Notes: generated by a model from the letters alone, not told the origin. A stretch of DNA of 64,000 nt from IMGVR_UViG_3300014494_000005:62001-126000, one strand, 5' to 3'; numbered from the stretch's first letter, positions 23,706 through 44,900 are shown. A program made the numbers and translations.

Positions 23706-25094
23706 TTAAATTACTACTAATGTTTTAGCAACTACTGCCTTATAAAATTCTGCACGTTTCTGGGTTACATTTTTTAATGAATATTCAACCTTAAAGTCTT
23801 CATATAATTGTTCACCAAGTTTTTTTCTTAAATCTGCATCCAATATAAGTCTCTTTAAATACTTAACCCAATATTTTCTTGCATTTTTTGGTAATTCCAT
23901 CGGAATTAATACACAATTTTCCATGTGCTTACCATGTACATTATATGGTGGAATATCTGAACATACTATAGGAAGTTTTCTTGTCCAACATTCAACTTGT
24001 TTAAGATTCGACTTCATTTTATTAAATGGATTATTGGCAAGTGGAGCAATAACTATATCAGTTTCATCAAGTACTTGTGCATATGTATTTGCTTTTTGTG
24101 TCCAACGTCTACCAAAATTACCCTCATTTTCATATTTTACGTTTCTTTCAAAATTCATAAGCCATTGAAGATAATCTGGATTTTTAATCATATGATGATT
24201 ATCAGTTAAAATTTTTTCATAAATTAAATACACACTTTCAACTGATTTAATATCTCTTTGTTTTTGATTAAAAACATTATTTCTATATTTTTCTTTCAAA
24301 TCTATGGGTAATTTAGGGATTATATCAACATTACCTCTGGAATTATTAATTGCTTTTACTGTTTGAGGTGTCCATAAACCTCTTTTTTGTAATTCATCAC
24401 CAAATTCTTGATTGAAAGTAATATCTGTTGTATTACCTTCAGTATCCCAACCGGAAATAATTACTTTGAATTTATTTCTAGTATTTATGTCATTTGATAA
24501 TACATTCATAACTCCTTCAAGTTGCTCCATATCACCTAAATGCGAACTACCTGCCATATAAGTAATTCGAACCAAACCATCAGGGTCAGGTTTCCAATTA
24601 TTTTGAAATTGTTTCATCCAAATAGGGTCAACAGAATTATAAAATACTTCAACATTATCTTTACCAGTTATTGTACGAATTTCTGAAGCAAATAAATCAG
24701 TTGTTGTTGTAACATAATCAGCAATTTTAAGATTTTCAATGATTGGAATATGTAATTTTTTTTCTTGACTCATTATATAAAAAGGATGTTGCCTATGTAA
24801 TTTCCAATAGTCATCAATATCAACAATTAATATTGTCCCAGCTTTTCTTAGTTCATTCGCTAATTGAATCATTTTTTGTGTTTCGCCAAGAAATTGGCGG
24901 TGATAATGTATGATATGAAATGTTTTAAGATAATCAATGTATTTAGGGTCATTAAAATCAATTTGTGGGTTAATTTCAACATAAAAATCTTCTGAATGAT
25001 TTCTTTCAAGTTCCATTGCTGGTGTTAATGTTCTAAAATAATTTACTCCAGCACCATCAAGATTGTAAAATAAAACTCTGATTTTTCCGTCCAT
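23706..25094 (-). CDS. Glycosyltransferase (GT-B, GT4-like)
   Basis: GVNYFR...P, IVDIDDYW, ADYVTTTT..., DIVIAPL....FNKMKSNLK.VE.....PIVCSD..PY. Confidence 0.8.
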   Translation of the reverse strand: MDGKIRVLFYNLDGAGVNYFRTLTPAMELERNHSEDFYVEINPQIDFNDPKYIDYLKTFHIIHYHRQFLGETQKMIQLANELRKAGTILIVDIDDYWKLHRQHPFYIMSQEKKLHIPIIENLKIADYVTTTTDLFASEIRTITGKDNVEVFYNSVDPIWMKQFQNNWKPDPDGLVRITYMAGSSHLGDMEQLEGVMNVLSNDINTRNKFKVIISGWDTEGNTTDITFNQEFGDELQKRGLWTPQTVKAINNSRGNVDIIPKLPIDLKEKYRNNVFNQKQRDIKSVESVYLIYEKILTDNHHMIKNPDYLQWLMNFERNVKYENEGNFGRRWTQKANTYAQVLDETDIVIAPLANNPFNKMKSNLKQVECWTRKLPIVCSDIPPYNVHGKHMENCVLIPMELPKNARKYWVKYLKRLILDADLRKKLGEQLYEDFKVEYSLKNVTQKRAEFYKAVVAKTLVVI

Positions 25095-25128
25095 GTTTAT
25101 AATTTATTATAAAATAATGTAATTTATT

Positions 25129-25137
25129 ACTAAATAC
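25129..25137 (-). promoter_or_regulatory. Variant motif (sense GTATTTAGT)
   Basis: Plus ACTAAATAC, 35 nt before ATG 25094. Confidence 0.4.
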
Positions 25138-25184
25138 GTAAAAATAATACAAAGTCATCAAATATGAAAGGGTTTTTAAAAAAA

Positions 25185-25967
25185 TTAAATAAAATTTAAT
25201 GTGCTTTTTGGTTTAATTTTATTTTCTATTGTTGGACATAATCCACAACACAATTCTTCTTTTGTAGATAAAAATTTTTTTAATTCATCATTTGAACAAT
25301 TTGAACTTAATGGTTGATACATATCAAATTCTTTCCAATATTGTTTTATTTCAGGATATTTTATTTTTTGTAATTGATAATATGTTACAATTGGACATTT
25401 CCATAATTTGCCATCATATAATTGTTTGCAAGAAACATCCCAACATACACTATAACTTTTTTTGGGATTATTTTCATTATGAAATGGTCGTATTAAATTA
25501 TCAATTCCGTTATATCTTTTAGACCAAATTTTAGTATTATCTATCACATCATATTTTATATCATATTTATTAACCCATTGATTTACCAATTCTAAATTTT
25601 CGTTTAAATTATGACCATGTAATGATATTTTTAAAAATATATTATTATTTTTTAAATAAATGGGCAAATTTGGATATTTATGTAATAATAATCCGTTAGT
25701 TAATAATTTTATATTACTATTTTTAAAATAATTTCTTATTAATTCTAATATTTCGTATATTTGGGGATTTAAAAGTGGTTCACCACCAAGTAAATGTATA
25801 CTACAAGGTTGAATTTTTTTGTACCATAATAAAAAATCATTTTCAATTTCTTTTAATGTTAATATTTTATTATGTTTACTATTTGTAAGATGATTACAAC
25901 TTTCACAACTTAAATTACAAAGATGAGATATGTGATAATCAATATGAAAATTTGTTTCTATATCCAT
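25185..25967 (-). CDS. Radical SAM protein
   Basis: CNLSCESC (CxxxCxxC), LLGGEPLLNP, LLTNG, C-terminal Cys cluster (CWDVSC...KCP...CCGLC). Confidence 0.85.
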   Translation of the reverse strand: MDIETNFHIDYHISHLCNLSCESCNHLTNSKHNKILTLKEIENDFLLWYKKIQPCSIHLLGGEPLLNPQIYEILELIRNYFKNSNIKLLTNGLLLHKYPNLPIYLKNNNIFLKISLHGHNLNENLELVNQWVNKYDIKYDVIDNTKIWSKRYNGIDNLIRPFHNENNPKKSYSVCWDVSCKQLYDGKLWKCPIVTYYQLQKIKYPEIKQYWKEFDMYQPLSSNCSNDELKKFLSTKEELCCGLCPTIENKIKPKSTLNFI

Positions 25968-26418: not shown

Positions 26419-27261
26419 TTATTTTAATCCTTGTATTAATGTATCGTTATATTTAATTCCATCATAACCATTTTTCATTGCTTTTTCTGCAATTGCTTTA
26501 TTTTTTAGATTCATTGATGGCACATTATATTGCTCACTTAATTTCTCAAAATTTACATGTGGAAACCAATTTTTTGCTAATATATCAACTGGTTCTTGTC
26601 CATCTTTATAAATAACACCTAATGCTTGTATGTCCAATAAATTTTCAAAATCAATTTCATATTTATCATATCCATCAATTGGTTTTAACATAAAAAAGTT
26701 TCCAATAACTGAATTTTCTTTAATTGGTTCTTTTCTATATGCGACAATTGTTTTTTCATTTTTACTTGGTGTTTCTGCTTGTAATGCAAGATTATCTTCT
26801 TCCAGAGAATCTAAAAATTCTGTATTTGTATTACCCTTACCACTTTCAGCATTATTATAATAATTGATTGCACCTTGATTTTCTACTTCTTCCATATTAC
26901 GTGCTTGCTCATATTCGTAAATATCTTGAATCTTATTTAATACCCTTGCTGTATCTTTTTCATTTAAATCAATTTTAATTGCTTTAAGTAACTCATTGTC
27001 AATTAATGCTTTAGTATATCTGTGGTGTCCATCAATTATTTGATTATCAATGCTTAACCAAATTGGATTCATATCATTAATATTACATTTTTCCATTTCA
27101 TCTGAATATACGACAGGTTGTGATGTTTTAATATCATCGTCTTCACTTGGATTTAATGAAATTAATTCATAATTTATACCTTCTTCATCAAGTTTTTGAA
27201 GAACTATTTCAAACGGTGCACTAACTTGTGGTAGATGATATGGTCTTCCATTTTTAAGCAT
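26419..27261 (-). CDS. ParB/Srx-like nuclease-domain protein
   Basis: PIWLS.DNQIIDGHHRY..A; upstream motif 27282. Confidence 0.65.
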   Translation of the reverse strand: MLKNGRPYHLPQVSAPFEIVLQKLDEEGINYELISLNPSEDDDIKTSQPVVYSDEMEKCNINDMNPIWLSIDNQIIDGHHRYTKALIDNELLKAIKIDLNEKDTARVLNKIQDIYEYEQARNMEEVENQGAINYYNNAESGKGNTNTEFLDSLEEDNLALQAETPSKNEKTIVAYRKEPIKENSVIGNFFMLKPIDGYDKYEIDFENLLDIQALGVIYKDGQEPVDILAKNWFPHVNFEKLSEQYNVPSMNLKNKAIAEKAMKNGYDGIKYNDTLIQGLK

Positions 27262-27297: not shown

Positions 27298-27864
27298 TTA
27301 ATTTTTTAATATATTTTGAATTTCTTCACGAATAATATTTAATATTGTAAATTTGTTTTCTAATAAAGATATTTTACCTTCTTTAGCTAAATATATGTTA
27401 AATCTAATACCTTTTGGAATCTGTTTCTTTATTGCTTCATAAGATTGAATATCAGTATCACGGTCTTCATAAACATTTATTTCCTTTAATTCTGGAAATT
27501 GCTGAATATAACGTAATGTTTTTTTACCCTTATCTGGTTCAGCACGTTTCATATCTACTTTATCAACACTAATATGATTTGCATCAAGTATTGCTTGAAC
27601 TTGTGGACGTAGTTTTTCCATTCTTGATGTAAGAATTACCACATAAGTATTTGGTTTTGCTTGTTCTTCTTTTAATTGTTTTAATACACTTGGAAATGGT
27701 TTAATATTGAAAACATTTAAATCCAAACTCTCAGGTCTGCCCCACCAACCTTGATATGGATATGGTTTTCCTATTTTCTCAGACCACTGAACTTTACCTA
27801 TTTCTTTTTCAGGACTCATTATGAGTGTCGAGTCAAAATCAAATACACAAAGTCTTTTTATCAT
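27298..27864 (-). CDS. HAD-family phosphatase (RNA-repair 'Swiss army knife' HAD type)
   Basis: CVFDFDSTL (DxD motif I), VILTSR (motif II), VYEDR (motif IV). Start moved to ATG 27864, overlapping the upstream TGA (ATGA). Confidence 0.8.
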   Translation of the reverse strand: MIKRLCVFDFDSTLIMSPEKEIGKVQWSEKIGKPYPYQGWWGRPESLDLNVFNIKPFPSVLKQLKEEQAKPNTYVVILTSRMEKLRPQVQAILDANHISVDKVDMKRAEPDKGKKTLRYIQQFPELKEINVYEDRDTDIQSYEAIKKQIPKGIRFNIYLAKEGKISLLENKFTILNIIREEIQNILKN

Positions 27865-28364
27865 AACAAACAATTATATTTCATTTCATTAATATTTCCT
27901 ATTTCTTCGCAATAAGGTTCAAAAAATCTTTTTGGTATTATATACATATCCATTTCTTTGAAAACACCTTTCTTTTGTTCAATCCTTGCTTTTTTCTTAT
28001 ATTCAATTTGATTTATATTTTCAACAATACAATCATGTATTCTTTTTGTTTTAGCAATATATGTAATTTTACCATCACTAATAATCCAATAATCAGCTTT
28101 TGTAATTAATAATCCTGATTGTCTTCCCCAATATCCGGTTTCAATACAAATATTGCCACTAATACTACCCATTTTATCAAATTTACATTCAATTGTTTTT
28201 TGTTTTTCTGCAAAGTTACCATTAAAAAGTATAATATCATAATAACTATATTCTTCTTTTTTCATATTTTTATATGCAAGAGGAAATAATTTTTCATTTA
28301 AATCTTTTAAACAAAAATCCTCAAATTCAAATCCCATTCTTGATGATTCTTTCCAATCAGCCAT
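27861..28364 (-). CDS. PD-(D/E)XK-family nuclease-like protein
   Basis: G.EFE.F, YDIILF, TIECKFD, then ICIET. Confidence 0.6.
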   Translation of the reverse strand: MADWKESSRMGFEFEDFCLKDLNEKLFPLAYKNMKKEEYSYYDIILFNGNFAEKQKTIECKFDKMGSISGNICIETGYWGRQSGLLITKADYWIISDGKITYIAKTKRIHDCIVENINQIEYKKKARIEQKKGVFKEMDMYIIPKRFFEPYCEEIGNINEMKYNCLL

Positions 28365-28365
28365 G

Positions 28366-28749
28366 TTATTTATATTCTACTTCAGTTACTTTACCTGTCA
28401 CAAATATAGGTCTTTTTAATGGTTGCCAATTAATTAATTTATTTGACATCATTGGTTTACCACCATTTGCTCGATTAACAGCCATTGTTATATGTGCTTT
28501 AGCATTATGCGTTTCAAAACCACTGACACCAACAGCCATTACTTTATCATCTATAGCGAATTCATTAACACTTAATCGTACTGGTAATCCTAAATATTTT
28601 TCAAGTTCTGGGTCAATTTCACCCATGTTTATTGTCATATGGTCACAAATTATTTTCCAATCATTAGGAATTATTGAACTAAAACGTTCAATAAGTCGTT
28701 GTTTTGACCTATCATCAAGAACGACTGCACTATAAGATATGTTATTCAT
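28366..28749 (-). CDS. 2H phosphoesterase (cyclic phosphodiesterase, tRNA-ligase CPD-like)
   Basis: Two HxT motifs: CDHMTIN and KAHITMA. Confidence 0.75.
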   Translation of the reverse strand: MNNISYSAVVLDDRSKQRLIERFSSIIPNDWKIICDHMTINMGEIDPELEKYLGLPVRLSVNEFAIDDKVMAVGVSGFETHNAKAHITMAVNRANGGKPMMSNKLINWQPLKRPIFVTGKVTEVEYK

Positions 28750-29405
28750 TAATATGTAAATTTTGTTAAAACATTATAATTTTTGTTTAATGCTTTTAAT
28801 GCTATTTCAACTTCTTTAAAGCATTCATTAATACCACCACCACATATTACTAATTTACCTGAAAATTTTTTTAAATAATCCATTAAGTCTGGTATATTAA
28901 TACAATCTTGTGCTGGTTCTAAAAGGTCACGAACAACACTTGTATCATAATCATATTGTCGCATAAATCCATTCCACATTTCTTCATCAATATCACGACT
29001 ATCATTAATATTGTGTTGAATCATATATTTAACAAGATTAACTGTTTCATCTTCTTCAGCACCTTCATCCATACAGGTTCTAAAAAAAGCATAACCTTTA
29101 TCTAAGTATTTGATAACCTGTAAATTATCTTCTTCCAATCCATTTTCTAACAACCACATTTTATAATCATTTTCACTTATCATACCTAATGTATCAGCAC
29201 CATTATATAATAAAGTAATTGAATTCATGTTATAAATATTTTCATTAATAAATTTTGTAAATTGATAAATATTAAAAGTAAAACCTTTTTCATATTCTGG
29301 TTGAATATCAACAGAAATTAAATTAGCGTTTTGAACAAGATTAATTCCAGAATCTTCCAATAATTTATTACGTTGCTGTTCTTTAATTATAATTTCTCTT
29401 TTCAT
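28749..29405 (-). CDS. Cysteine hydrolase (isochorismatase/nicotinamidase-like) fold protein
   Basis: LISVDIQP (catalytic D) and LVICGGGINECF (catalytic C); leader MKREIII.EQQ...LLE. Confidence 0.5.
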   Translation of the reverse strand: MKREIIIKEQQRNKLLEDSGINLVQNANLISVDIQPEYEKGFTFNIYQFTKFINENIYNMNSITLLYNGADTLGMISENDYKMWLLENGLEEDNLQVIKYLDKGYAFFRTCMDEGAEEDETVNLVKYMIQHNINDSRDIDEEMWNGFMRQYDYDTSVVRDLLEPAQDCINIPDLMDYLKKFSGKLVICGGGINECFKEVEIALKALNKNYNVLTKFTY

Positions 29406-29435: not shown

Positions 29436-32400
29436 TTAAGCATAAAATATTTTATTTTTAATTGGTATTGCTTGCGGAGAATCCATAATATCTTCACCAT
29501 TTATATATAATTCTTCAATTTTTAATGATGTATTTTTAAATAATGTTATTTCTTTTTCATCTTCGCCAAGAGCCAAATCCATATTAGCATATATTGTATT
29601 AGTCCAATCAATATTGTCTTCTTTCACAGATGTTTTTATTATTGCTTTATTATATTTTTTACTATCTCCCCAATGTGCTTCAGCAGCATTTTCTTCCCAA
29701 GACCAATAAATACCTAAATGTTTTCCTTGTGTACCAATATGATAAATCCAATTATCATCAACTGTCATTTCTCTCCAAATATCAATAGTATCATTTGGTT
29801 TTATTTTTTCTTTTATTTTATCTATTACATCATCATATTTATATTTTAATTCCCATATAAACCATTCTTTAAAATCTTCATTTTGTTCAATAACTTCCTT
29901 ATCTTCATCCTCCAAATTATTTTCATATTTATAATATTCAATATATCTTTCATAATTATCACTACGTTTCACATCTTTTATATATTGCGGTGTTATTATA
30001 TTATCTGAAGTTATTGAATCAATTGGTGTTTCATTTAAAACATCATTATCTGTAAGTTTCCATAATAATTTATGTTTTAATTTTTCATTATGGCTAAAAT
30101 CTTCATAATTATTTTGTAAAAATTCTAATACTGATGCTTCATTTGGGTCTGAATATTCTGCTCTTCCTCTTCCACTTTCAGTATTCCATATATCATATTC
30201 TTTAGCAAAGAAATTAATATCAACTATTTTATTGTTTACAACATATTTACCATCACCAACTTCATGATATTCTTCAGTAAGATTAATAGGCATACTACCA
30301 TATTTAATAAGACCATAATATTCTAAATAAAAATCATATTGTGGATTTTTTCTTTTTGTTGCACGTAATATTTCAATTGATGTTTCTTTTTGGTCTTCAC
30401 CTCTTTGAATAAATTCTTCACCCGAATCACTCAATCCAAAATTATTAGAATCACTTACTCTTTGTAATACTTGATAATTGAAATTATTATATACATATTC
30501 GGTAATTCCTAATATATCTGCCATATCTGCATGATTAAAAGCACCATCAGATTGTGCAACAAATAAGTTTCCATCACTATCAGCAATTGCTCTAACATTT
30601 TTATCAAAATTAGTTAACGATTTTGGATTCTTAAAAAATAAATCACCCTCTTCACTAATTGCATATGGTTTTTCTTTATTTTTTTCTATACCACCCATTG
30701 CTTTAACATCCATTGCAGTATTTGAATCAGGAACATTAAAAGTTTTTTCTGCATATTTATCTGCAACACCTTCTTGTTTTATTGATTTATTTTTTTGACT
30801 TGTCAAATTTAATAAATCATCTCGATTATTCCTAACATTATTTGAATATACCTTTAACAATAATGATTTTAACATATCACCAATCTCTTTACCTTTTAAT
30901 CCAAATTGAATTAAATCATTGCCATTAATTGCTAGTTCACCAACTGCTTTTGGATATTTGCCTTGTAATAATTCTTGTGCTGCGGTTTCAATTACACTAG
31001 GTATTATTTGGCTTTGAAGTGATTGTGGTGATGTTACATACATATTATGCACAACTGTTCGTGCTTCAATTAAATTAGTTGCTTCACCACTATCAAATGC
31101 CATTTCAAGTGCTTTAATTTCCTTATAAGTATCAATATCACCCTTTAAATTATTTTTATAAAATTCTGCAGGATTTGGTAATAATCGTATTAATAAATAA
31201 ATAAACTCACCTATTGTTTTAACTTCTTCAAATGGACTTCTATCAATTGTTGATTGTTTTAAATCAAAATTAAAAATTTGTTGAAATAAACCAGTGTCTT
31301 TAAGTAGTTGTATACCAATACGTTTGTCACCTTTTTTTAAAATTTTATCGAACTCAATTAATATTCTTTCTGGCGGAATTTCTTTAATACGACTTGCATT
31401 ATCTTTAATCATTTGCATTGTTTGTGGTTCAATTGTAAAATCAAAACGACTTGCAAACCCTATCATTCGCATCATACGTAATGGGTCATCTGAAAATGCC
31501 TGTGGATTTGCAGCAGAAATTTGTTTATTTTTTATATCTTCCAATCCACCGAGTGGGTCAATAAATTTACCTGAATTAATATTAATTGCCATTGCATTCA
31601 GCTTTGCGTCACGTCTCGTCAAATCATCTTCAATTGGAAGATTTTCATCACTCTGAACATCAAAACCATGATAACCACCTTCACCATTTGGTTTTTCTTT
31701 ACGTGGTAACGCTATATCATAATCAGTACCATCTTTATCAATAAATTTTATAACACCAAATGATTTGCCAACAACATCAACTTTACCAAATTTTTGTAAT
31801 TGCGATATTAATAAATCAATTGATGTGTTTCTAACAATTAAATCAATATCTTTATTGGGTTTGTTAAGTACCAAATCTCTCACAACCCCACCAACAGCAT
31901 AAATTTCAGACCCTAAGTCATTTATAAGTGATTGAATAAATGGTTTTTGTTTTAAATTATTTACAAATTCAGTAATTTTATTATTTGGTTGTATATTGTT
32001 TTCGCACATATTCTCTGCAATATTTATTGAATCTAAATCAAAAACTACTTTAGCTGGAAATGATGAAATTCCTAATTCTCGTAATGCATCAAATCTATGA
32101 CCACCTTCTAAAACATATGAACCATCTTCATCAATAACAACAATTAGTGGACTAATTTCTTTATTATATTCAATCTGTTTTGCTAATTTTTTTGTTTTTT
32201 GTTCTTCATCAGGAGAATAATATTTTAAATCTCCCATTTGTGGAAATGAATTGAATGAAACTTCTCTAATTCCATTAAGTATTTCATAATTTGTTAATGA
32301 TGCTTCAATTGAATTCATGTTTGGAACATCATTTCGAATTATTAATCCATTAATATTATTTCCATTTATTATTGGAAATTCATGATTTAATGTTTCATAA

Positions 32401-32498
32401 CTAAAATTTTGTGCATTACTGATAACAGATTCATTAATTTGTTTTCTCATATAATTTTCAAATAATATTATTTCACTATTAATAATGTCTATTAGCAT
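29436..32498 (-). CDS. Polyvalent protein: ParB-like + class II CCA-adding/poly(A) polymerase-family nucleotidyltransferase + two unknown domains + ADP-ribosyltransferase-like domain
   Basis: EGGHRFDAL (ParB); YAVGGVVRDL...KDIDL, DDLTRRDAKLNAMA, FSDDPLRMMR, PERI..EF.K (CCA); IWRE / GIYWSW / EDEKEI (R-S-E ART). Start moved to MLIDII (32498), 13 nt from the motif. Confidence 0.85.
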   Translation of the reverse strand: MLIDIINSEIILFENYMRKQINESVISNAQNFSYETLNHEFPIINGNNINGLIIRNDVPNMNSIEASLTNYEILNGIREVSFNSFPQMGDLKYYSPDEEQKTKKLAKQIEYNKEISPLIVVIDEDGSYVLEGGHRFDALRELGISSFPAKVVFDLDSINIAENMCENNIQPNNKITEFVNNLKQKPFIQSLINDLGSEIYAVGGVVRDLVLNKPNKDIDLIVRNTSIDLLISQLQKFGKVDVVGKSFGVIKFIDKDGTDYDIALPRKEKPNGEGGYHGFDVQSDENLPIEDDLTRRDAKLNAMAININSGKFIDPLGGLEDIKNKQISAANPQAFSDDPLRMMRMIGFASRFDFTIEPQTMQMIKDNASRIKEIPPERILIEFDKILKKGDKRIGIQLLKDTGLFQQIFNFDLKQSTIDRSPFEEVKTIGEFIYLLIRLLPNPAEFYKNNLKGDIDTYKEIKALEMAFDSGEATNLIEARTVVHNMYVTSPQSLQSQIIPSVIETAAQELLQGKYPKAVGELAINGNDLIQFGLKGKEIGDMLKSLLLKVYSNNVRNNRDDLLNLTSQKNKSIKQEGVADKYAEKTFNVPDSNTAMDVKAMGGIEKNKEKPYAISEEGDLFFKNPKSLTNFDKNVRAIADSDGNLFVAQSDGAFNHADMADILGITEYVYNNFNYQVLQRVSDSNNFGLSDSGEEFIQRGEDQKETSIEILRATKRKNPQYDFYLEYYGLIKYGSMPINLTEEYHEVGDGKYVVNNKIVDINFFAKEYDIWNTESGRGRAEYSDPNEASVLEFLQNNYEDFSHNEKLKHKLLWKLTDNDVLNETPIDSITSDNIITPQYIKDVKRSDNYERYIEYYKYENNLEDEDKEVIEQNEDFKEWFIWELKYKYDDVIDKIKEKIKPNDTIDIWREMTVDDNWIYHIGTQGKHLGIYWSWEENAAEAHWGDSKKYNKAIIKTSVKEDNIDWTNTIYANMDLALGEDEKEITLFKNTSLKIEELYINGEDIMDSPQAIPIKNKIFYA

Positions 32499-32510
32499 AA
32501 AAATCTTTAA

Positions 32511-32519
32511 TATAAATAC
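32511..32519 (-). promoter_or_regulatory. Phage GTATTTATA upstream motif (leftward of divergent pair)
   Basis: 13 nt before ATG 32498. Confidence 0.75.
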
Positions 32520-32589
32520 AATAAAAAAAATCAATATTTAAAATTTTAAATAAAATTTTGTCCATCATAATAAAATATTAATTATTGTA

Positions 32590-32598
32590 GTATTTATA
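32590..32598 (+). promoter_or_regulatory. Phage GTATTTATA upstream motif on plus strand (rightward of divergent pair)
   Basis: Reads GTATTTATA on plus, 67 nt before ATG 32665 of the only plus-strand gene. Confidence 0.7.
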
Positions 32599-32664
32599 TA
32601 CATTAGAAGAAGATTTAAATTTTTTCCGTAATTATATGTTCTATTTTTAATAAAAAACAAATGT

Positions 32665-33669
32665 ATGAAAAATTATGATATAAACGAAATTGCAAATTTA
32701 TATTTTATAAAAAAATACTCATTAGAAAAAATAGGAAAACTCATGCACGTACAGCCAAAAAAAATTAGCAATTTATTAAAGATAAATGGATATGTTTTAG
32801 ATAATAGGTCTCATGATGGTAATAGTAGAAGATATTATGTTGATAAAAATTTTTTTAAAAAAATTGATAATAAAAATAAAGCATATGTATTAGGATTAAT
32901 TATTTCAGATGGTTGCATTTATAAAAATGCAATTACATTCACATCTAAAGATATTGAGTTGGTTGAAATCTTAAAGAGAGAACTTAAATCCGAACATAAA
33001 TTAGCAACATATAATGTTTTTGATAAAAGAACAAATAAATATTATTTAAGAAATTCATTATCAATTCCATCTAAAGAAATTATTAATGATTTAAATAATT
33101 TGGGTGTTTTTTCTAAGAAATCCTTTGATTGTCAAATGCCAAATATACCTGAAGAATATTTTTGGCATTTTGTTAGAGGTATTTTTGATGGTGATGGAAC
33201 AATATTTAAAGCAACATCAAATAAGGAAGGATGTTTATATTTTTCAATTATTGGGTCGGAAAATTTATTGACAGAAATAAAAAATAAATTTAATTTAGTG
33301 GGAATATCTAATACAAAAATAATTAATACTGATTATAAATCAAACAATGGACATCTTATTAGAATTAATTACCATTCATTTCATGATGTTAATATATTAA
33401 AAAATAAAATATATTGTGATTCTGAAGACTTAAGGTTATCAAGAAAATATGATTTATTTCAAACACTAAGAGAATATAAAAAAGGTAATTTTGACCACAC
33501 AAAACAATTACGACAAATAAAAATGTATGATTTAAATAATAATTTTATTAAACATTTTAATAATTTTCATGAAGTAAAAAAAGAAACAGGATTATCATAT
33601 AAATCAATTCATAGAGTTGCGATGGGTATTAGAAAAAACACCAAAAAATATATATTTAAATATATTTAA
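32665..33669 (+). mobile_element. Free-standing two-motif LAGLIDADG homing endonuclease with C-terminal NUMOD1-like HTH
   Basis: AYVLGLIISDGCI and FVRGIFDGDGTI; C-terminal IKMYDLNNNFIKHF.N..E....G...I; only plus-strand gene. Confidence 0.85.
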
Positions 33670-36600
33670 TTTATTTTTTTCTTGTGTTCTCTTGCATAAT
33701 TATTTACAAACTTATTATATATATTTTCACTTATTTTATGATTCATACCGCTTTTTACTTTTTTTCTAAATTCTACTTCTGCTTTATTGGCAATTTCATG
33801 TGCACCATCTTTGCCACTATCGTCATTACTATACTTTAAGCCATAATATTTCATTAAATGTCTTTCTAGCGTTTCATGTAAAAGTATTGCACCTAAATCA
33901 TCAGGTTTAATTAAAAATACATCATCAATCCAAATTTCGTCTTCAGGAATATATTTAGCATATTTTTGCTCTTTCTTTGGTAAATCCAAATCAACGTAAT
34001 GATGTCCACCGTCAACATATTCATCGAACGAATTTTTTCTCACATGGTCACCATTAATTGCATATACTTTATAGTCATCTTCTTGAAATAAGAACAATTT
34101 ATCTAATCCATGTATTTTATTGTCTTTTTCAATTTGCTTTTCAAAATCCTTAAATGATTGTTCATTAAGATTATTATTTTTCATTAAAACTAAATAACCA
34201 CCATCACCATCTTCAGCAATAATTTCGCCAGTTAAATCAAATTCATCAATATCTGAAAAATCATTTTCATTTGAATATCTTGTAGCATCTTCAAATGTTT
34301 TTGTAACCCAGACAATATTATTAGCAGGATATTTATTCAATTCAGCTAATTTTTCTTCAGGTATATTCATTTCTTCATTACCAAGTTCATCTCTTTCAAA
34401 CCTAACAACATCTCCAGCAGATGTACCTTTTTTTTGTGAAAATAAACTATCTACCCGATATGCTTTACCAATATAATTAACATTTTCATTAATTGTTTTA
34501 ATATCAAGATTATTAATATCACCTTGATTACAAGCTACACTTGTATTTCCCAAACCACCTAATCTACATTTCTTTTTTACTGTAACAGCTTGTGCTCCTT
34601 TCATAAATGATTTTTTTCCAATTTCATCAAGAGCAAATTTATCTTGTGTTGCATCACCTACAACATGATGATATTCTAAATCTTCTTTTACACTTTCTGG
34701 AGTTGTTGGTACGTTATTATCTGTAACTGGAGATGTATCATTATTTTCATATGGTGGAAAATTATCCTGTCCAATACTATTTGGTGTTGAGAATTTTGAA
34801 GTTCCATCTTCAGTTATTTTTATATTTTCTGCACCATTCGGTTGTAAGTAACCATTACTAAATCCCACATCAAAAAATGCAATTACTCCATTTTTTTTAT
34901 ATCCTAAATTAGTATAATTAAAATAATCCAAACTTTCAACTCCATATTGTTTTGCTTCTTCAGCAATTCTTAATATAGAATAAAAAAATTCAGCATCTTC
35001 TGGATTTTTTGACATATATCCATCAATTTTTTTTGTATCTATGTCCCCATATCCATTTATATAATAATCAATAATATCATAAAGTCTGAGATTAAATATT
35101 TTTCCAAAAATAAAATCAATTCTTTCTTTAAGTCTTTTAAATTTTTGTGGGTCTGTTTTTAATTTTTCCAAAACAATTGCATATGTTTTAGAAATATATG
35201 TATTTTTTGAATCGATTGTAAATACATTATATGGTTGTGCTATATATTTTAATGGTTTATTTATAAGTTTTAAATTTTCTGCTGCTTCACTATTATCTGC
35301 AGTTATTTTTAAAATTTTATCATCACCAATATCATAAGCAACACCATATTCACCAGCATCAATAAATTTTGGTTCGTTATATCCTCTTATTTTAGCAATT
35401 TGTTTTGCGATATTATCTGCAATATTTCTATTATATTTTTCATCTAATATTTCTTCGTTTTCAGGTAAAAATATAATATTTGCATCTCCCAAATCAGGTT
35501 CATTAACGCCATAATAATCACCAACATCAAAAAATTTTAAAATACCATCCTCATATCCAAGATTTTTGGGATTACTATAATCATCTGATTTAATATTATA
35601 ACTCAACAGTTCTTTTTTTATTTCAAATAATTCTATTAACCAATCATATGCTTGTTGTCTTTCAATATTAGAAATATTTACTTCAGGTTTTTCTGTAAGT
35701 ATATTTTTTGCCAAATTAACTAAATTATTATAATCAAAACGTTTTTTCATTATAATATAGAAATCAACTGTCGTCATATCATTTGGCATAATAGTATCTA
35801 TTATTTCAACATTTCGAACAAATTGTTGAACTGGTTTGTCAATAATATTACGTTCAATTATTCCAAAAAATGATTTATTTTTTTCAGTATCAACTATTTT
35901 ATATATATTGTAAACAATTGCAATATGTATTGGTTTTACTCTTATTAATTTAGCTGCAGCATCTGCTTCACTAATATCAGTAGTAAGTTTTAAAATCTTT
36001 GTATCTCCAATATCAAATACATGACCACCAGTACTACCTGCCATATATTCTATAGTTTTTATTCCTAATTTTTCTGCAATTGAATTTGCTAATTGAATTG
36101 CATAATTTTTATCAAATACGATGTCTTGAACTTGTGGTACTTCATGTTTAATATCTTCATTTATAACATATTCTTCACTACTAAGTGGTTCTCTATCATA
36201 ATAATTTTGTGAAATAAGATATTTTTGAAGTTCTAATAAATTATTATAAAATTTTTTCTTATCATCAACATGATTTAATGTTTCCTTAAGATTATTTACA
36301 CATTCATGAAAATTATCTACAAGTTGTGGCATATTTTTTATAGGCTTATTTGGATATATGCTTCTTCTTATAATAAATTCTTTAAATTCTTCATTTATTA
36401 CACCATCGCCATCACCTACACCATATGGCATTAATGCCCACATTCCATGTCTTTGGTCTTGTCCAACGTTACCTATATCGGAAAGAATATCATCATTACC
36501 ATTAGCAAAATTATACAATTCATACATGTGATATTTTTGTTTTTTTTGAGGACTATAATGAGTATCATATACTTCATCATTAAGACCATAATCAGTTAAT

Positions 36601-37157
36601 ACAATTGTGGGTTGACCATCATGAAGTACTTCACCATAAGAACTTGGTCTACTTAAATCACCAACATTTATTGAATAATTTGCAACAAAATCAATTAAAT
36701 CAATAACAAATTCATTATTATCTAATTGATTTTTAATATTTTCATCTTGTCCAAATATTGGTCTACCACCTCTATTTTCAGATTCATAGTTTCTTAAATA
36801 ATAAAATAAATCGCTAAGACTTGGAATACCAGTTAATTCTTTGATTCTCTTTTCACCCACCTTTTTTACTTTTTCCGCAATCAACCAACTATCATCATCT
36901 GCATTGTCATAAATAATTGTAACAATATGTTGTGTATCTCTATAATATCCAATATTGGCTTCGGCTTCATTTTGTGCAATACCTTTTTGATTTTTTGCTA
37001 ATTTTAATACTTTCTGACCATCAATATCATAAACAATTCTACCACTACCACTACCAATTCTTGATAGATGTTCATTAGCATATTGTATTCTACTTGCAAA
37101 TGATTTTATGTTAAGAAATTCCGTTAAGAAATTCTGTTTAAATTCATCGTATGTCAT
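33666..37157 (-). CDS. Polyvalent protein: three tandem protein-kinase-like domains + ART-like domain + zincin metallopeptidase
   Basis: Gly loops GSGSGRIVY / AGSTGGHVF / AGEYGVAY; VLKL / ILKL / ILKI; D...N.G and DYG/DVG x3; AYR...WVT..A.RY; LLHETLE...AHEIA. Confidence 0.85.
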   Translation of the reverse strand: MTYDEFKQNFLTEFLNIKSFASRIQYANEHLSRIGSGSGRIVYDIDGQKVLKLAKNQKGIAQNEAEANIGYYRDTQHIVTIIYDNADDDSWLIAEKVKKVGEKRIKELTGIPSLSDLFYYLRNYESENRGGRPIFGQDENIKNQLDNNEFVIDLIDFVANYSINVGDLSRPSSYGEVLHDGQPTIVLTDYGLNDEVYDTHYSPQKKQKYHMYELYNFANGNDDILSDIGNVGQDQRHGMWALMPYGVGDGDGVINEEFKEFIIRRSIYPNKPIKNMPQLVDNFHECVNNLKETLNHVDDKKKFYNNLLELQKYLISQNYYDREPLSSEEYVINEDIKHEVPQVQDIVFDKNYAIQLANSIAEKLGIKTIEYMAGSTGGHVFDIGDTKILKLTTDISEADAAAKLIRVKPIHIAIVYNIYKIVDTEKNKSFFGIIERNIIDKPVQQFVRNVEIIDTIMPNDMTTVDFYIIMKKRFDYNNLVNLAKNILTEKPEVNISNIERQQAYDWLIELFEIKKELLSYNIKSDDYSNPKNLGYEDGILKFFDVGDYYGVNEPDLGDANIIFLPENEEILDEKYNRNIADNIAKQIAKIRGYNEPKFIDAGEYGVAYDIGDDKILKITADNSEAAENLKLINKPLKYIAQPYNVFTIDSKNTYISKTYAIVLEKLKTDPQKFKRLKERIDFIFGKIFNLRLYDIIDYYINGYGDIDTKKIDGYMSKNPEDAEFFYSILRIAEEAKQYGVESLDYFNYTNLGYKKNGVIAFFDVGFSNGYLQPNGAENIKITEDGTSKFSTPNSIGQDNFPPYENNDTSPVTDNNVPTTPESVKEDLEYHHVVGDATQDKFALDEIGKKSFMKGAQAVTVKKKCRLGGLGNTSVACNQGDINNLDIKTINENVNYIGKAYRVDSLFSQKKGTSAGDVVRFERDELGNEEMNIPEEKLAELNKYPANNIVWVTKTFEDATRYSNENDFSDIDEFDLTGEIIAEDGDGGYLVLMKNNNLNEQSFKDFEKQIEKDNKIHGLDKLFLFQEDDYKVYAINGDHVRKNSFDEYVDGGHHYVDLDLPKKEQKYAKYIPEDEIWIDDVFLIKPDDLGAILLHETLERHLMKYYGLKYSNDDSGKDGAHEIANKAEVEFRKKVKSGMNHKISENIYNKFVNNYAREHKKKIN

Positions 37158-39261: not shown

Positions 39262-40044
39262 TTATTTTTCATCTTCATATGACTTAAACACAAGTGTAAT
39301 ATATTCTATTAAATGAGGTACAATATCTAAATATTTCATTTCAGAAACACTATACCAACCATATTTTGTATTTTCATCATTTAATTTAACATCTGTTTCT
39401 TCACCAGTATATCTACAAGCAAATACATGTTCAATACTATCAGTATGTCTTTGAATACTAAATGTTTTTATAAATTTTTTAATTTCTAATTTAGTTTCTT
39501 CAAGAATTTCTCTTTCAATCGCTTGTTGTGGTTTTTCACCCTTTTTAATTTCACCGCCAACTAATGACCATTTATTTGGCATCCAAATTTTACTATCATC
39601 TGCTCTTTTAAGTAATAAAATTTTGTTATTATTATTAACAATTACTGCAACTGCGTTTTTTTTTAATTCTTTCTTTTCTTCATTTAACCTTGGTGTTTGA
39701 TATGGCATTAATTCTGAATTAGGATTTGTTGTCATATCTTGTTTAATTTTTTTTGACCTTTCAATACTTGCACGGTCTTGATTTAATGTTGTTTCAATAA
39801 AATTTTTCATTAAATCACCGCCAGCAAGTGCGTATTGTATTTTATCTCCAGTTTGTGGATTAAAATAATCAAAAAAATTCTTTAATCTTTTTAATGCTTG
39901 ATATGTCAAAACACCGTTTTTAAGTATAAAATTAGCTCGTTTTAGACCATCTGTATCTGAAGTGGATGCTTTTGCTATCTCAATACTTTTAAGTATATTT
40001 TGAGGTATATAATATTGTTTATTTAGTAATTCTTGATTTGCCAT
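39262..40044 (-). CDS. Two-domain protein: N-terminal unknown + Nudix hydrolase
   Basis: Nudix box GGEIKKGEKPQQAIEREILEETKL; ILLLKRA; W.LVGG. Confidence 0.85.
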   Translation of the reverse strand: MANQELLNKQYYIPQNILKSIEIAKASTSDTDGLKRANFILKNGVLTYQALKRLKNFFDYFNPQTGDKIQYALAGGDLMKNFIETTLNQDRASIERSKKIKQDMTTNPNSELMPYQTPRLNEEKKELKKNAVAVIVNNNNKILLLKRADDSKIWMPNKWSLVGGEIKKGEKPQQAIEREILEETKLEIKKFIKTFSIQRHTDSIEHVFACRYTGEETDVKLNDENTKYGWYSVSEMKYLDIVPHLIEYITLVFKSYEDEK

Positions 40045-41285
40045 TATGATGTCATTATATTAACTGTAGATTTATTTATTATTCTTATCATATCTTTAAT
40101 TTTATCACAAGTAATATTAATTTGATTATCAATATCTTTCAAAAATTCTTTTTCATTAATTCTTATAATATGACAATTGTGTTTTTCCTTAAGATAATTT
40201 TCACGTATAATATCTCTTTCTTTACATTTTATTTTATTATGATTAATTTCATCCCATTCAATACATATATTATATTTCTCAATATAACCATCCACCCAAT
40301 ATCTTATAAATTTTTTCTCACCGCCATTTAATGCATGTTGAATTGGTAAACCTAGCTTTTCGGAAATCATATCTAAATAAATTATTGAATTCGCATTATA
40401 TGATGGAACACGTTTTTTCCAAATTTCACCATATCTTTCAATCATAGTATTTACAATTTTTTCTGAAACCAATTTATTTTGTGAGGGATATTCAACACCA
40501 AATCTTTCTAAACTCGTTTTTTTTATTTTATCTTTAATCTCTAAAGAAGAATTTGGATTCTTCACACCATATCTTTTCAAATTTGTTTTATTTGCCTTTT
40601 CTTTAACATTTTTATTCAATAATGAACATTCAACACCATATTTAATTAAATTAGTTCTTTTAATTTTTTCTTTGGTATCAGATGATTGTAAATTATATTC
40701 AACACCAAATTTTTTCAAACATGTTTGTTTTTTCTTTTCTTTAATTTTGGCAGATTGTGAATTATGTTCAACACCAAATTTTAATAAATTGGTTTGTTTT
40801 ATTTTATTTTTAGTATCTTTACACAATAAATTTGTTGTTGTGCCAAATTTTTTCAAACATGTTTGTTTTCTCTTTTCTCTAACTTCTGCTAATTGTGATT
40901 GATGCTCAACACCATGTTTTTCGAAAAATAATTTTTTTCTTTTTTCTTGTACTTCTAGTGATTGTAATGGATTTTCAACGCCATATTTTTTCAAATAACC
41001 TTGTTTTATTCTATTTTTAATATCCTCATCAGAACCTTTACATTTTACTGAACAATGCGTAGTATAACCTCTATTAAATTTTATAAATTTAACTAAATTA
41101 CCACACTTACATTTCGGTAATTCAGATATATTATTTAGATAATTAAATAACATTTGTCCCCAATTTGTTATCTTAAAATTTTTGTTAAATTCTATTATGT
41201 TATTAAGTTCATTAGGAAATTCAGTTCTTATTTGCGAAATTCCTTTATAACCACCATCTAAAAAATTTAAAAAATTATTATTCAT
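40044..41285 (-). CDS. Homing-endonuclease-like protein with KQT.LKKFGV repeats and C-terminal PD-(D/E)XK-like domain
   Basis: About 8 repeats K.KQTCLKKFGV....QS..IK; C-terminal YWVDGYIEKYNICIEWDE..H. Confidence 0.7.
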   Translation of the reverse strand: MNNNFLNFLDGGYKGISQIRTEFPNELNNIIEFNKNFKITNWGQMLFNYLNNISELPKCKCGNLVKFIKFNRGYTTHCSVKCKGSDEDIKNRIKQGYLKKYGVENPLQSLEVQEKRKKLFFEKHGVEHQSQLAEVREKRKQTCLKKFGTTTNLLCKDTKNKIKQTNLLKFGVEHNSQSAKIKEKKKQTCLKKFGVEYNLQSSDTKEKIKRTNLIKYGVECSLLNKNVKEKANKTNLKRYGVKNPNSSLEIKDKIKKTSLERFGVEYPSQNKLVSEKIVNTMIERYGEIWKKRVPSYNANSIIYLDMISEKLGLPIQHALNGGEKKFIRYWVDGYIEKYNICIEWDEINHNKIKCKERDIIRENYLKEKHNCHIIRINEKEFLKDIDNQINITCDKIKDMIRIINKSTVNIMTS

Positions 41286-41947: not shown

Positions 41948-44900
41948 TTAAGATTCACCATCATCAACATCTAAAAATTCTGCTGCTTCTTCCTCACCAT
42001 TTTCATGTTTTTCAATAACAAAATCTTCAAATGCTTCATCAGAATGTTCCATTTCAGCAAATACCCATTCCATAGTTTTATCTAATGGAATTTCGTATTT
42101 TTGTTTGAATTCTGCAAACGCAGTCATTCTAAATTTTCTTTCTTTTTCTAAAAACAATTCTCTATCACTTTTAGTTGCCAATTCAGTAATTTTTAATTCT
42201 TGAAGTTTCTTTTGATGTTCTTCTCTTTGTTTGTCAAGTTCAAGTTCAATTTGACTTTTAGGAATATCAACATTACTTCTGATTATTTGAATATAAACAC
42301 CATTATACAAACCAACATGATAATCACAACCATCTTTTACAAGTACTAAATCGCCTTCTTTATATTCATCATTTATTGATTTGATTCTTGGCTTATTACT
42401 TATTGTCATTTTTTCATTAAGATAAATTAATGCATTATCATATATTTCATAATGAACGCAATATTCTTCATTCATTTTAAAACCATTCCAAATCTTTCTT
42501 GGGTCATATCCGGTTTTATTCCAGAAATCAACTTCAAGGTCTTCCAAATGCATTGATTCATCAAAATTATCCGAATCAAAATTTCTTAATACTAATTCAT
42601 CAAGTAATGGACTAAAATCTGCTTTTATTAAATTATCTTCTTTATCCATTTTAACTAATATTTTTTTCTGAACATCTGGTGCAAATCCAACCAAAAGTGT
42701 TTCAACTCTTTTATTAAAAGCATCGAGATATTTCGCATAATTATAAACCCCTGTCATATTTGGATTTTGTTGAAGGTCTTCATTATTAATTAATGTGGCA
42801 CAATATCTTTCTTCACCAGTAATTTTATCAATAATTTTACGTGAATCTCCATGAGATTTTTTATATCCACTATTTACATAATATACCACGCTATCTAATT
42901 CAGGTTCTGCTGGCATGTAATTAGCAATTAACTTCATTTTATCATCAATAGTGGGTTCTTTTTTTAATTTTTCAAGATTAAGACTATCTTTATGCTTTTC
43001 AAAAAGTTCTTCTCCAATTTTTTCACGTTTTTCAATTAATAATTCCATATGTGCTTGCATGCCCTTTTCTCTACCATTTTTATCATCACCTCTTTTTTTA
43101 TAAGCACTTAAAGTTTTTTTAATTTTACTCTTACTTGCAATTTTCTTTAAAGGAATTCTCATATAACGAATATCATCAGCATAATCATAATAATACTTTA
43201 CAAATTCTTTACCTTGACCATGAAGAATCATTTTTAATCCCTCATCAATAAATTCTTCAATATATTCAGGCATTACTTTAGACTTGATAGTATTACCAGT
43301 TAATTTAATTTTTTCTTTCATTTCACCAGTTTTCTTATCTTTAGCCATTGAAAGTGTACCATAATTAATACGTGAAAGATTTAAACAAGAAATACTTTTG
43401 CCATCGTTATCTATGCTTATATAATTAGTTTTATTTGATGTATTACTTTGAAACTCTTCCTTATTATATTTTTCAATAAGTGCATCAATACCTACTTTAT
43501 CATCATACTTCCACATTTCTTCAATTGTACCATCGTAATCCATTATTCCTTCAATTGCTCCATTTAAACTAATATTAGTTCTTTCAGGATATTGAAAATT
43601 AATACCATCAGTAACCGCAAGTAATGCAATACAACCATATTTACTAAACCAATTAATTGCATGTCTTAAATGAATTCTACCCACACAAGTAATTCTTGCT
43701 GCACAAACATTATCTGACCAGTTAAATGAAATATTCGAACCCAATGCACCAAATAATGAATTATTTAAAATCTTAATAGGTAATTGTTTGACTTTAGACA
43801 TTGCAACATCTGCTGCAGTAAGTTCATTATTAATATATTTCACATGTATTTCAGGGTCAATTTGTCTTAACAATTCAACTTCTTCCTTATCCAATTTAGT
43901 ACTATTTGCCAATTTTTTGTAAATATTACGAGTAGTTGTAAGATAAAGTAATAATTTTTTCATAACACCTGTAATATCAAAAATTGGAAATACTCCTTCT
44001 GTTAATTGAATCATAGGATAAAGACTGGCATAATCAATTTTAATAATACGTTTTGAATATCCTGTTTTATAACATCTTGCTAAACCACCACTAAATTTTT
44101 CATATTTATCTGATTGAGGTATTGCCAAATCATTTTCATAACTCCACGCAGTCATAAGCAAATTCCATATTGCTGCAGTACCCATTGTACAAATACGTTG
44201 ATATGTAGTAGGTACTATTTTAGCAAGCATAAATGATGATTGATTATATAATTCATCGACTTGTTCTGTTTCCCACAAGTCATCAAGAAGATATTGTTTT
44301 ACAAGTTTCTTACCACCAATAAATATAATTAAATTTTTTGGAAGTGCTTCTATTTTAAACCAATCTATAAAACCCTTACATTCATCAAGATATGTCTTTT
44401 TTAATACTTTATATTGTTCATCATCAAAATTGGTTTTATTAATTTGAAGTTTGTATAAATTTCTTGATACTTCCTGATATTCATCAGGTACTTGAACATA
44501 ATTATTTTTTTCATCGATAAGAAATATTTTATTTTCATTATAATATTTACCAATTGAATTATCTTCTCCTTCGATATATGTTCTATTCTGTCTTGCCAAT
44601 TTTTCAAACTTTGCAATATATTTTAATCCTGTTGATTTTAAATCAGAATTTACTGCTGCAGTTCGTTTTGCAGCATGTAATGTATCAATAATTGAATATC
44701 CCCACATTTCTGTAGCAGTATATTTGTCAGCAGTGTTACCATACTTAACAGAAACATTACCTCTTCTTTTTAATTGTATTCCTTCTTTAAGTCCGGTAGG
44801 TACTTCAGTTAAATCCATTTTTAATAATTTTGCTCTACCTAGAATAAAGTCAAAATCGAATGTTTCAGAATTATGTCCTAAAATAACTGCTGGATGTAAA

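Follow-up and report, generated by a model that had tools for sequence, protein, structure and literature searches.

We analysed a multidomain gene of a ~349-kb jumbo phage originating from peat and permafrost, in which a predicted CCA-adding enzyme and a predicted ADP-ribosyltransferase (ART) belong to the same polypeptide. The window, that is, the whole stretch of DNA under study, comprises 64,000 nucleotides and corresponds to bases 62001-126000 of the IMG/VR virus record IMGVR_UViG_3300014494_000005 (348,923 bp, rated as 100% complete). The GC content is 26% and the genes are crowded onto the minus strand, on which all window features given below are located unless marked with (+). From the N- to the C-terminus the protein has five parts: a ParB/Srx-like domain, a class II CCA-adding core, and three further units, here called modules A, B and C. 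The open reading frame (ORF) beginning with a TTG at 32534 (29436..32534) has 1032 residues, and residue numbers are counted from this ORF throughout. Because the homology to relatives starts only at residues 33-40 of this frame, and because the database gene call (P0001) has 1004 residues, the start is probably the ATG at 32450, which gives a gene of ~1004 residues at 29436..32450. A first-pass annotation, generated from the sequence alone, had ended its span at 32498, which is another in-frame ATG; the features it had listed were found on the minus strand in their proposed places.

The centre of the ORF (30780..31985, residues 184-585) is predicted to be a class II tRNA nucleotidyltransferase which is complete from the head through neck and body to the tail and whose catalytic and template motifs are intact, as indicated by Pfam, PHROG, NCBIfam and PDB matches and by the motifs themselves. 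Pfam recognizes both the PolyA_pol head (PF01743; residues 211-339, E 8.7e-22, 78.2 bits for a cut-off of 23) and the PolyA_pol_RNAbd neck domain (PF12627; residues 365-421, E 4.6e-18, 65.2 bits for a cut-off of 22), and the tRNA nucleotidyltransferase family of PHROG matches with an E-value of 4.5e-58. The best family match in NCBIfam, and the sole one over the full length, is the Bacillus-type CCA enzyme NF009814 (19-394 of 398 aligned to 14-389 of 396, E 3.6e-48). In the PDB, the core comes closest to the A-adding enzyme from Aquifex and to the CCA enzymes from Bacillus, Planococcus and Thermotoga, all with E-values of ~1e-24. Furthermore, the core is 43% identical to a stand-alone, 388-residue enzyme of the 636-kb uncultured phage LR756504, which stops where the core stops. 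It is the only CCA-type nucleotidyltransferase gene in the genome.

In class II enzymes, motif B, RRD(FTxN), reads the ribose, and motif D, (E/D)DxxR, is the nucleotide template; in structures, its Asp and Arg pair with the incoming base. Read from the sequence, motif A (31833-31892) consists here of GGVVRD (31875-31892) and DIDLIV (31833-31850), motif B is RRDAKLN (31596-31616), and motif D is DDPLR (31476-31490). The loop between motifs A and B is also present, and RRDAKLN and DDPLR align to RRDFTIN and EDPVR of PDB 4WBY. The complete core and its GGVVRD, DID, RRD and DDPLR motifs had already been recognized by the first-pass annotation, which in addition took RRDAKLN for the template-like segment and questioned the specificity of the enzyme on this ground. 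This doubt was drawn from the wrong motif, since RRDAKLN is motif B and the template is motif D, which is intact as DDPLR. RRDAKLN itself is slightly unusual, the motif B of relatives being RRDxTIN.

Module C forms the C-terminus of the protein (29439..30044, residues 831-1032) and consists of its own N-terminal helical subdomain of ~80 residues and an ART-fold core (~29448-29801). It is confidently modelled with an ART fold and represents a previously undescribed family, in which an R-[S/T]-ExE triad is nearly invariant. Residues 575-1032, covering modules A, B and C (458 residues), were compared with 1.84 billion representatives, one per 50%-identity cluster. This search retrieved 949 proteins at E <=0.001, many of them stand-alone proteins of ~200 residues which cover module C alone. 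An AlphaFold model of module C, built from an alignment of 46 members, reached a mean predicted local distance difference test score (pLDDT) of 94.8. Nearly all of its top Foldseek matches in the PDB are ART folds, as for example PARP14, exotoxin A, cholera toxin A1, TreX and Tpt1. After structural realignment, the single best match is the ART-like domain of IcmQ (Z 6.9), followed by the Rhs ART toxins TreX and TreTu (Z ~6), by LT-IIB, cholera toxin A1, PltA, CARDS and pertussis S1 (Z 5-5.6), and by Tpt1 (Z 4.5-4.8); the ART-fold matches cover model residues ~82-199. A NAD-arginine ART and a pierisin-like protein are among the AlphaFold DB cluster neighbours, the named language-model neighbours are DraT and DUF4765, and the ESM Atlas structure list, which was built on the model of a neighbouring hit, contains DraT, DUF3990 and ART-PolyVal.

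The residues of the triad are conserved throughout the family. They are R921 (codon 29772-29774) in the DIWRE motif (29769-29783), S945 (29700-29702) in the GIYWSW motif (29697-29714), and E993 (29556-29558) and E995 (29550-29552) in the EDEKEI motif (29547-29564). All three motifs had been placed correctly before; the conserved pair of glutamates, however, is that of E-K-E and not that of E-D-E. Among 106 copies of module C from clusters at 50% identity, tandem copies included, the arginine is present in 105 of 105, serine or threonine in 98 of 106, and both glutamates in all 106. In R-S-E ARTs, the arginine lies in the first strand, the serine closes the second strand, and the ExE stands at the start of a later strand. 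In the model of module C, the arginine lies in strand 86-95, the serine at the end of strand 113-115, and E165 starts strand 165-168.

No ART family of Pfam matches any of the 46 members at E <=0.1, module C has no sequence match in the PDB, and its alignment with ART-PolyVal (hhalign) was not significant, with a probability of 0.3%. Module C and ART-PolyVal are separate families, which can occur in one and the same protein (P0080 and P0039). A remote relative was found in cultured phages, namely the "hypothetical protein" gp246 of Escherichia coli phage phi92, together with its homologue in Klebsiella phage Eowyn. The Eowyn homologue was retrieved by the BFVD fold search, with a template modelling score (TM-score) of 0.67/0.70 to module C, and phi92 gp246 aligns with module C in hhalign at a probability of 96% (E 2.8e-9), with the R, YW[ST] and ExE motifs in register. 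Reached only through profile and fold comparison, phi92 gp246 thus offers a remote, testable homologue. The first-pass annotation had called the C-terminal domain Alt-like, a designation which is not supported: module C matches no Pfam ART family, the protein has no PHROG or Pfam ADPrib_exo_Tox match that would indicate an Alt-type relation, neither Alt nor ModA nor ModB is named among the 50 BFVD fold matches listed, and the nearest cultured relative is phi92 gp246.

The fusion of these domains is real. Each of 14 DNA runs, which stem from metagenomes of permafrost, peat and bioreactors in different studies dated 2018 to 2025, contains all sampled words of the window stretch 29436-33800, and six peat metatranscriptomes carry 27-65% of them. 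The same arrangement is found on three more IMG/VR contigs (L015, L016 and L018). An assembly chimera, named at the outset as one of two findings which would overturn the prediction, can be dismissed, because the 14 independent DNA runs and the three contigs carry the same sequence. Thereby, the central proposal of the first-pass annotation was borne out, namely that a single polypeptide begins with a ParB/Srx-like domain, continues with a complete class II tRNA nucleotidyltransferase and has an ART-fold domain of the R-S-ExE kind at its C-terminus. The order CCA core, module A, module B, module C also recurs in many related proteins. Scans for promoters and terminators were uninformative, giving fewer sites than in shuffled sequences.

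The N-terminal ParB/Srx-like domain (31986..32450, residues ~29-183) contains an EGGHR motif (32082-32111), read as the nucleotide-binding motif of the GxxR type. Every profile match of this domain is weak, but all of them agree: Pfam ParB_N at E 0.044 (14.3 bits for a cut-off of 26.3), a ParB-like PHROG at E 3.6e-7, and SbnI, Noc and ParB of NCBIfam at E ~1e-3. The predicted assignment is therefore weak but consistent. The domain is shared with P0052 and P0053, where it stands in frame, and it is missing in the close relative L017. Profile comparisons of the domain with the C-terminal region of the upstream half of the gene and with orf280, both described below, gave no significance.

The two domains between the CCA core and module C, left unassigned by the first-pass annotation, proved to be real and separately mobile modules, which are shuffled and recur in relatives. 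Module A (30300..30776, residues 587-745, "EGVADKYAE...NPKSL") is mobile and often found in tandem, with up to five copies per protein, and often accompanies ART-PolyVal; its N-P, G, H and R residues are kept in 95-100% of 151 copies. Module B (30015..30287, residues 750-840) is a small alpha/beta unit of ~90 residues. A joint model of both modules reached a pLDDT of 88.6, and fold searches with it (Foldseek against the PDB, VIA-align wide, AlphaFold DB clusters and ESM Atlas) returned nothing convincing. Weak hints at a toxin-43 or CdiA-CT RNase-like (BECR-type) fold for module A, and weak, non-specific winged-helix-like matches for module B, led to no assignment. None of the modules A, B and C has a Pfam match, models built from the work of Iyer et al. 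2017 included, and tblastn found neither module A nor module C in any of the 50,697 GenBank phage records. Elsewhere in the genome, outside the window, a further module A stands alone in a frame of 206 residues (G000:C1:281122-281514 (+)), ~1.2 kb from a tRNA-His gene (282699-282791).

Comparison with related phages indicates that a giant mosaic gene has been split, the CCA ORF being its downstream half, and that an endonuclease gene now parts the two halves. In many relatives, the upstream half (33666..37157, 1163 residues) and the CCA protein are joined in one frame. Between the two halves, on the opposite strand, lies a LAGLIDADG homing endonuclease gene (32665..33669 (+); Pfam LAGLIDADG_3, E 1.4e-9). 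The relative P0053 aligns to residues 1-891 of the upstream half and then directly to the CCA ORF from residue 40, and P0021 joins the whole 1163-residue neighbour to the CCA core. In the close relative L017 (89-93% DNA identity) there is a single open frame of at least 2202 residues. The window segment ~31991-33662 has no counterpart in L017 (compared at L017:3995-4012); it contains the endonuclease gene and the segment coding for the ParB-like domain, along with a short intergenic stretch. At this locus, a homing endonuclease gene parts a giant multidomain gene, and both of the resulting genes are apparently viable. Among 30 long relatives, the CCA core is present in 22, ART-PolyVal in nine and a 2H domain in eight, and others carry GNAT, NUDIX or ADPrib_exo_Tox domains. 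The domains of the relatives are heavily shuffled and duplicated, and module C also occurs triplicated.

Downstream of the CCA gene follows a set of genes, most of which are kept in related phages and two of which point to the healing of RNA ends. Next to the CCA gene is orf218 (28749..29405), conserved in L015, L016, L018, L019 and L021 and missing from L017. It is followed by a minimal 2H phosphoesterase of 127 residues (28366..28749), with the HxT motifs HMTI and HITM and a match to Pfam tRNA_lig_CPD (E 2.7e-5, 24.2 bits for a cut-off of 23), and by the conserved orf167 (27861..28364), which belongs to PHROG 13596 of unknown function. Next comes a HAD phosphatase of the "Swiss-army-knife RNA repair" family (27298..27873; Pfam HAD_SAK_1, PF10307, E 1.4e-7, 32 bits for a cut-off of 25.6), in which DFDST corresponds to the DxDxT motif. 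The last gene of the set, orf280 (26419..27261), is conserved and carries a DGHHR motif of the ParB/Srx type, which aligns with the EGGHR of the ParB-like domain without significance. As a separate observation, orf167 shows a D...E-x-K pattern, which could indicate a PD-(D/E)xK nuclease.

This association with RNA repair is found elsewhere too. In P0004, P0009 and L020, the CCA protein itself contains a fused 2H domain. In another relative (L021:9419-10339), a Swiss-army-knife HAD phosphatase is fused to ART-PolyVal, which represents a second, independent fusion of an ART to RNA repair. In distant phages, stand-alone module C genes directly adjoin a 2H gene (L022 and L044) or a CCA gene (L028). 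The 113 ORFs within 3 kb of module C at 16 distant loci include two cREC, two 2H, one CCA and one RNA ligase gene; portal, prohead protease and baseplate genes also lie within this distance of some distant module C genes. For three stand-alone module C proteins on metagenome contigs, the surroundings are mostly unannotated.

The genome contains 33 predicted tRNA genes, of which one encodes its CCA end and 32 do not, and 31 of the 33 are located at G000:C1:238316-268463, outside the window. In many tRNA genes, the discriminator is followed by a C and then an A-rich run instead of CCA. Neither these tRNA genes, nor the splitting of the giant gene, nor the conserved 2H/HAD set headed by the ORF had been noticed in the first-pass annotation. 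Two RNA ligase genes are present in the genome, none of them in the cluster of CCA, 2H and HAD genes, and no match to KptA (PF01885) was found in the genome.

From these data, we favour, with a probability of about 0.6, the reading that the ORF is the downstream half of an endonuclease-split, polyvalent-type jumbo-phage protein, which joins CCA upkeep and ADP-ribosylation and acts alongside the end healing by the neighbouring 2H and HAD proteins. The nucleotidyltransferase would add or restore CCA on the 33 tRNAs of the phage, 32 of which lack an encoded CCA, and it could also restore host tRNAs whose 3' ends were trimmed or cut during infection. The 2H phosphoesterase would open 2',3'-cyclic phosphate ends and the HAD phosphatase would strip the remaining phosphate, leaving a free 3'-OH for the nucleotidyltransferase, so that the two might together stand in for the HD domain found in the E. 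coli-type enzyme. In the same conflict, module C would consume NAD+ and ADP-ribosylate a macromolecule. Its likeliest target would be a host protein, for example a nuclease directed against tRNA or a factor for translation or transcription, as for other ARTs of polyvalent proteins; we favour a protein target because of the partner domains found elsewhere (ART-PolyVal, GNAT and ADPrib_exo_Tox) and because of the ExE motif. A role at RNA ends is kept open because of the persistent link to 2H and CCA and the missing KptA. The ParB/Srx-like domain and modules A and B may provide accessory functions which depend on nucleoside triphosphates or bind nucleic acids.

Several observations weigh against this favoured reading. 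The ParB assignment lies under the Pfam threshold, and the predicted CCA core misses the equivalog cut-off of NF009814 (164.6 for 290 bits). No sequence profile ties module C to any named ART family, and its fold matches are of moderate strength (Z <8, and Foldseek E >=0.06 against the PDB); the ART fold is therefore likely, not proven. Approximately 10 of the 16 distant module C loci have no RNA-repair neighbour, some having virion genes nearby instead, and the link to RNA repair is thus recurrent and not universal. Finally, the gene itself is surrounded by genes for a DNA polymerase, a helicase, a NUDIX protein, a radical SAM protein and a glycosyltransferase, and not by virion genes.

This last point bears on how, and when, the protein might act. 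Polyvalent proteins usually sit beside virion genes and are predicted to be injected (Iyer et al. 2017, PMC5512222). In the same way, the whole protein could be packaged in the virion and act as an early effector like T4 Alt, in the first minutes and before any phage gene expression. In its architecture and its set of domains, the protein agrees with those polyvalent proteins for which injection is predicted (PMC5512222): it has five domains, or at least nine together with the upstream half, in agreement with the two to fifteen effector-type domains in mosaic orthologues that characterize this class. Relatives combine ART-PolyVal, GNAT and other host-modifying domains, and at some distant module C loci, portal, prohead protease or baseplate genes are no more than 3 kb away. 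At the locus itself, however, the gene does not lie among late or virion genes, and no fusion to MuF, portal or MPTase domains was found there; no MuF, portal or other virion gene adjoins it, the neighbours being the polymerase, helicase, NUDIX and radical SAM genes, and the protein has no sequence relation to Alt, ModA or ModB. By analogy, an injection of this protein with the DNA is possible, yet we consider a virion-packaged early effector rather unlikely. For the same reason, we do not follow the first-pass annotation in describing the enzyme as delivered, since the local gene context does not speak for it.

The other alternatives concern the activities of the two enzymatic parts. The neighbouring 2H protein matches the fungal tRNA-ligase CPD type, which leaves a 2'-phosphate. 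Module C could accordingly be an RNA-end-directed ART, a functional analogue of KptA/Tpt1, which would remove or transfer the 2'-phosphate in a NAD+-dependent manner, or ADP-ribosylate the terminal phosphate of the RNA. The 2H protein would open the 2',3'-cyclic phosphate to a 2'-phosphate, and 2H, HAD, ART and CCA core would form a ligase-independent line of tRNA 3'-end repair. This would agree with the recurring fusion or adjacency of module C with 2H and CCA, with the presence of two RNA ligase genes in a phage that has no KptA, with the Tpt1 structures among the fold matches (Z 4.5-4.8), and with phage sirtuins beside SAK-HAD genes having been proposed as NAD-dependent stand-ins for KptA (PMC9503650). 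Nevertheless, the R-S-ExE signature is typical of arginine- or guanine-modifying ARTs and differs from the R-H-R-R tetrad of KptA, toxin-type ARTs match better than Tpt1, and module C occurs triplicated and together with ART-PolyVal, GNAT and ADPrib_exo_Tox in proteins which have no RNA-repair domain. Such an RNA-end-directed ART thus appears unlikely. A bolder version, which we regard as distinctly improbable, is that module C founds a new family of NAD+-dependent RNA-end enzymes and forms, with 2H, HAD and the CCA core, a self-contained, ligase-independent pathway. Equally improbable is its proposed course, in which tRNA 3' ends cut by host defence nucleases would be rebuilt, with module C clearing the 2'-phosphate or ADP-ribosylating the end. 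On the opposite side, module C might be a non-catalytic ART-like fold, with its conserved residues being structural and its function that of a binding or scaffold domain like Legionella IcmQ, which is its single best structural match (Z 6.9). IcmQ binds NAD and is not known to transfer ADP-ribose. Tandem triplication, as seen for module C, is also more usual for binding modules. The invariant arginine and glutamates and the 92% conservation of S/T are, by contrast, the pattern expected of a catalytic triad, which makes a mere scaffold very unlikely. As for the nucleotidyltransferase, it could add A or CC instead of CCA, be of the poly(A)-polymerase type, or be a toxin-like nucleotidyltransferase which modifies tRNA, given that the Aquifex A-adding enzyme matches with the same E-value as true CCA enzymes, that the NCBIfam equivalog cut-offs are missed, and that motif B deviates slightly from the RRDxTIN of relatives. 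We regard this as improbable in view of the full-length match to the Bacillus-type CCA enzyme, which no other family equals, of the presence of motifs A, B and D and of the A-B loop, and of the fact that this single gene serves 32 tRNAs without CCA.

Each part of the favoured polyvalent-type protein resembles known systems and departs from them. The CCA core has the same head, neck, body and tail, and the same motifs A (GGxVRD...DxD), B and D, as class II CCA enzymes lacking the HD domain (Bacillus type, NF009814; PDB 1MIV). For jumbo phages, CCA enzymes have been described before (PMC7824862); in contrast to these and to the Bacillus-type enzymes, the core is here embedded in a protein of 1004 residues, ancestrally more than 2000, and scores under the equivalog cut-off. 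The E. coli protein for CCA addition and repair (NF008137) similarly pairs CCA addition with 3'-end cleaning by a phosphoesterase, which here would come from separate 2H and HAD genes, or from the fused 2H of relatives, and not from an HD domain. With polyvalent proteins (PMC5512222), the ORF shares many enzymatic domains, frequent ARTs, domains assigned, here tentatively, to the ParB superfamily, mosaicism and domain duplication, and its relatives likewise carry ART-PolyVal, GNAT and 2H domains. It differs from them by the CCA core, a position away from virion genes and the splitting by a homing endonuclease gene; the word CCA has no occurrence in the text of Iyer et al. 2017 (PMC5512222).

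With R-S-E ARTs such as cholera toxin/LT, pertussis S1, DraT and T4 Alt, ModA and ModB, module C shares the fold, the first-strand arginine, the Ser/Thr closing the second strand and the ExE. Like the phage members of this group it is phage-encoded and would presumably act on host or RNA targets. In contrast to all of them, it has its own helical subdomain and no detectable sequence relation to any, and thus represents a separate family. To KptA/Tpt1 the resemblance is one of fold, the signature being R-S-ExE. The original work on Swiss-army-knife and KptA/2H RNA repair systems is said to be that of Burroughs and Aravind. These systems show the same clustering of 2H, SAK-type HAD and template-independent nucleotidyltransferase, and also the association of a NAD-dependent enzyme with RNA-end cleaning (PMC7824862, PMC9503650). 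In the present phage, by contrast, there is neither a KptA nor a clustered RNA ligase, and the NAD-dependent part would be an R-S-ExE ART instead of KptA or a sirtuin.

Phages are known to encode CCA-adding enzymes and, separately, ARTs; no description of a stable physical and genomic coupling of a CCA enzyme with an ART was found in the literature searched. The arrangement ties the upkeep of tRNA ends to a predicted NAD-dependent modification. Should the ART act on RNA ends, or in a conflict over tRNA and translation, a new enzymatic step would join those by which large phages protect their supply for translation. In the case of RNA ends, an R-S-ExE ART would be at work in RNA repair instead of as a toxin.

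Some further observations were made in the genome and in other phages. A ParB-plus-CCA match in a KVP40-type phage turned out to be no fusion, as the KVP40 ORF is a plain CCA enzyme of 365 residues. This ORF (NC_005083; L005:3280-4377) lies beside the major head protein gene, and the RefSeq annotation table has no coding sequence for this stretch. ARAGORN reported a tRNA with the anticodon CTA as tRNA-Pyl (G000:C1:268386-268463, outside the window). It may be an amber suppressor, hinting that stop codons are recoded in some part of the phage. Within the window, the ORFs read well in the standard code. The upstream half of the giant gene contains three repeats with a glycine-rich loop and a lysine, a pattern which recalls protein kinases (as in G-S-G-S-G-R-I-V-Y...V-L-K-L-A-K), together with the conserved motif C-x-L-G-G...A-C-N-Q-G-D and with DGGHHY and HETLERH motifs in its C-terminal region. 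Apart from a weak match to TA0956, Pfam recognizes none of these repeats and motifs. Just downstream of the RNA-repair set, radical SAM and glycosyltransferase-like genes (23706-25967) may constitute a nucleic-acid modification module. Two further homing endonuclease genes with PHROG matches (40044-41285 and 45992-47128) flank the gene for a DNA polymerase of 1223 residues (41948-45619), and the region around this gene seems to be rich in mobile endonucleases.

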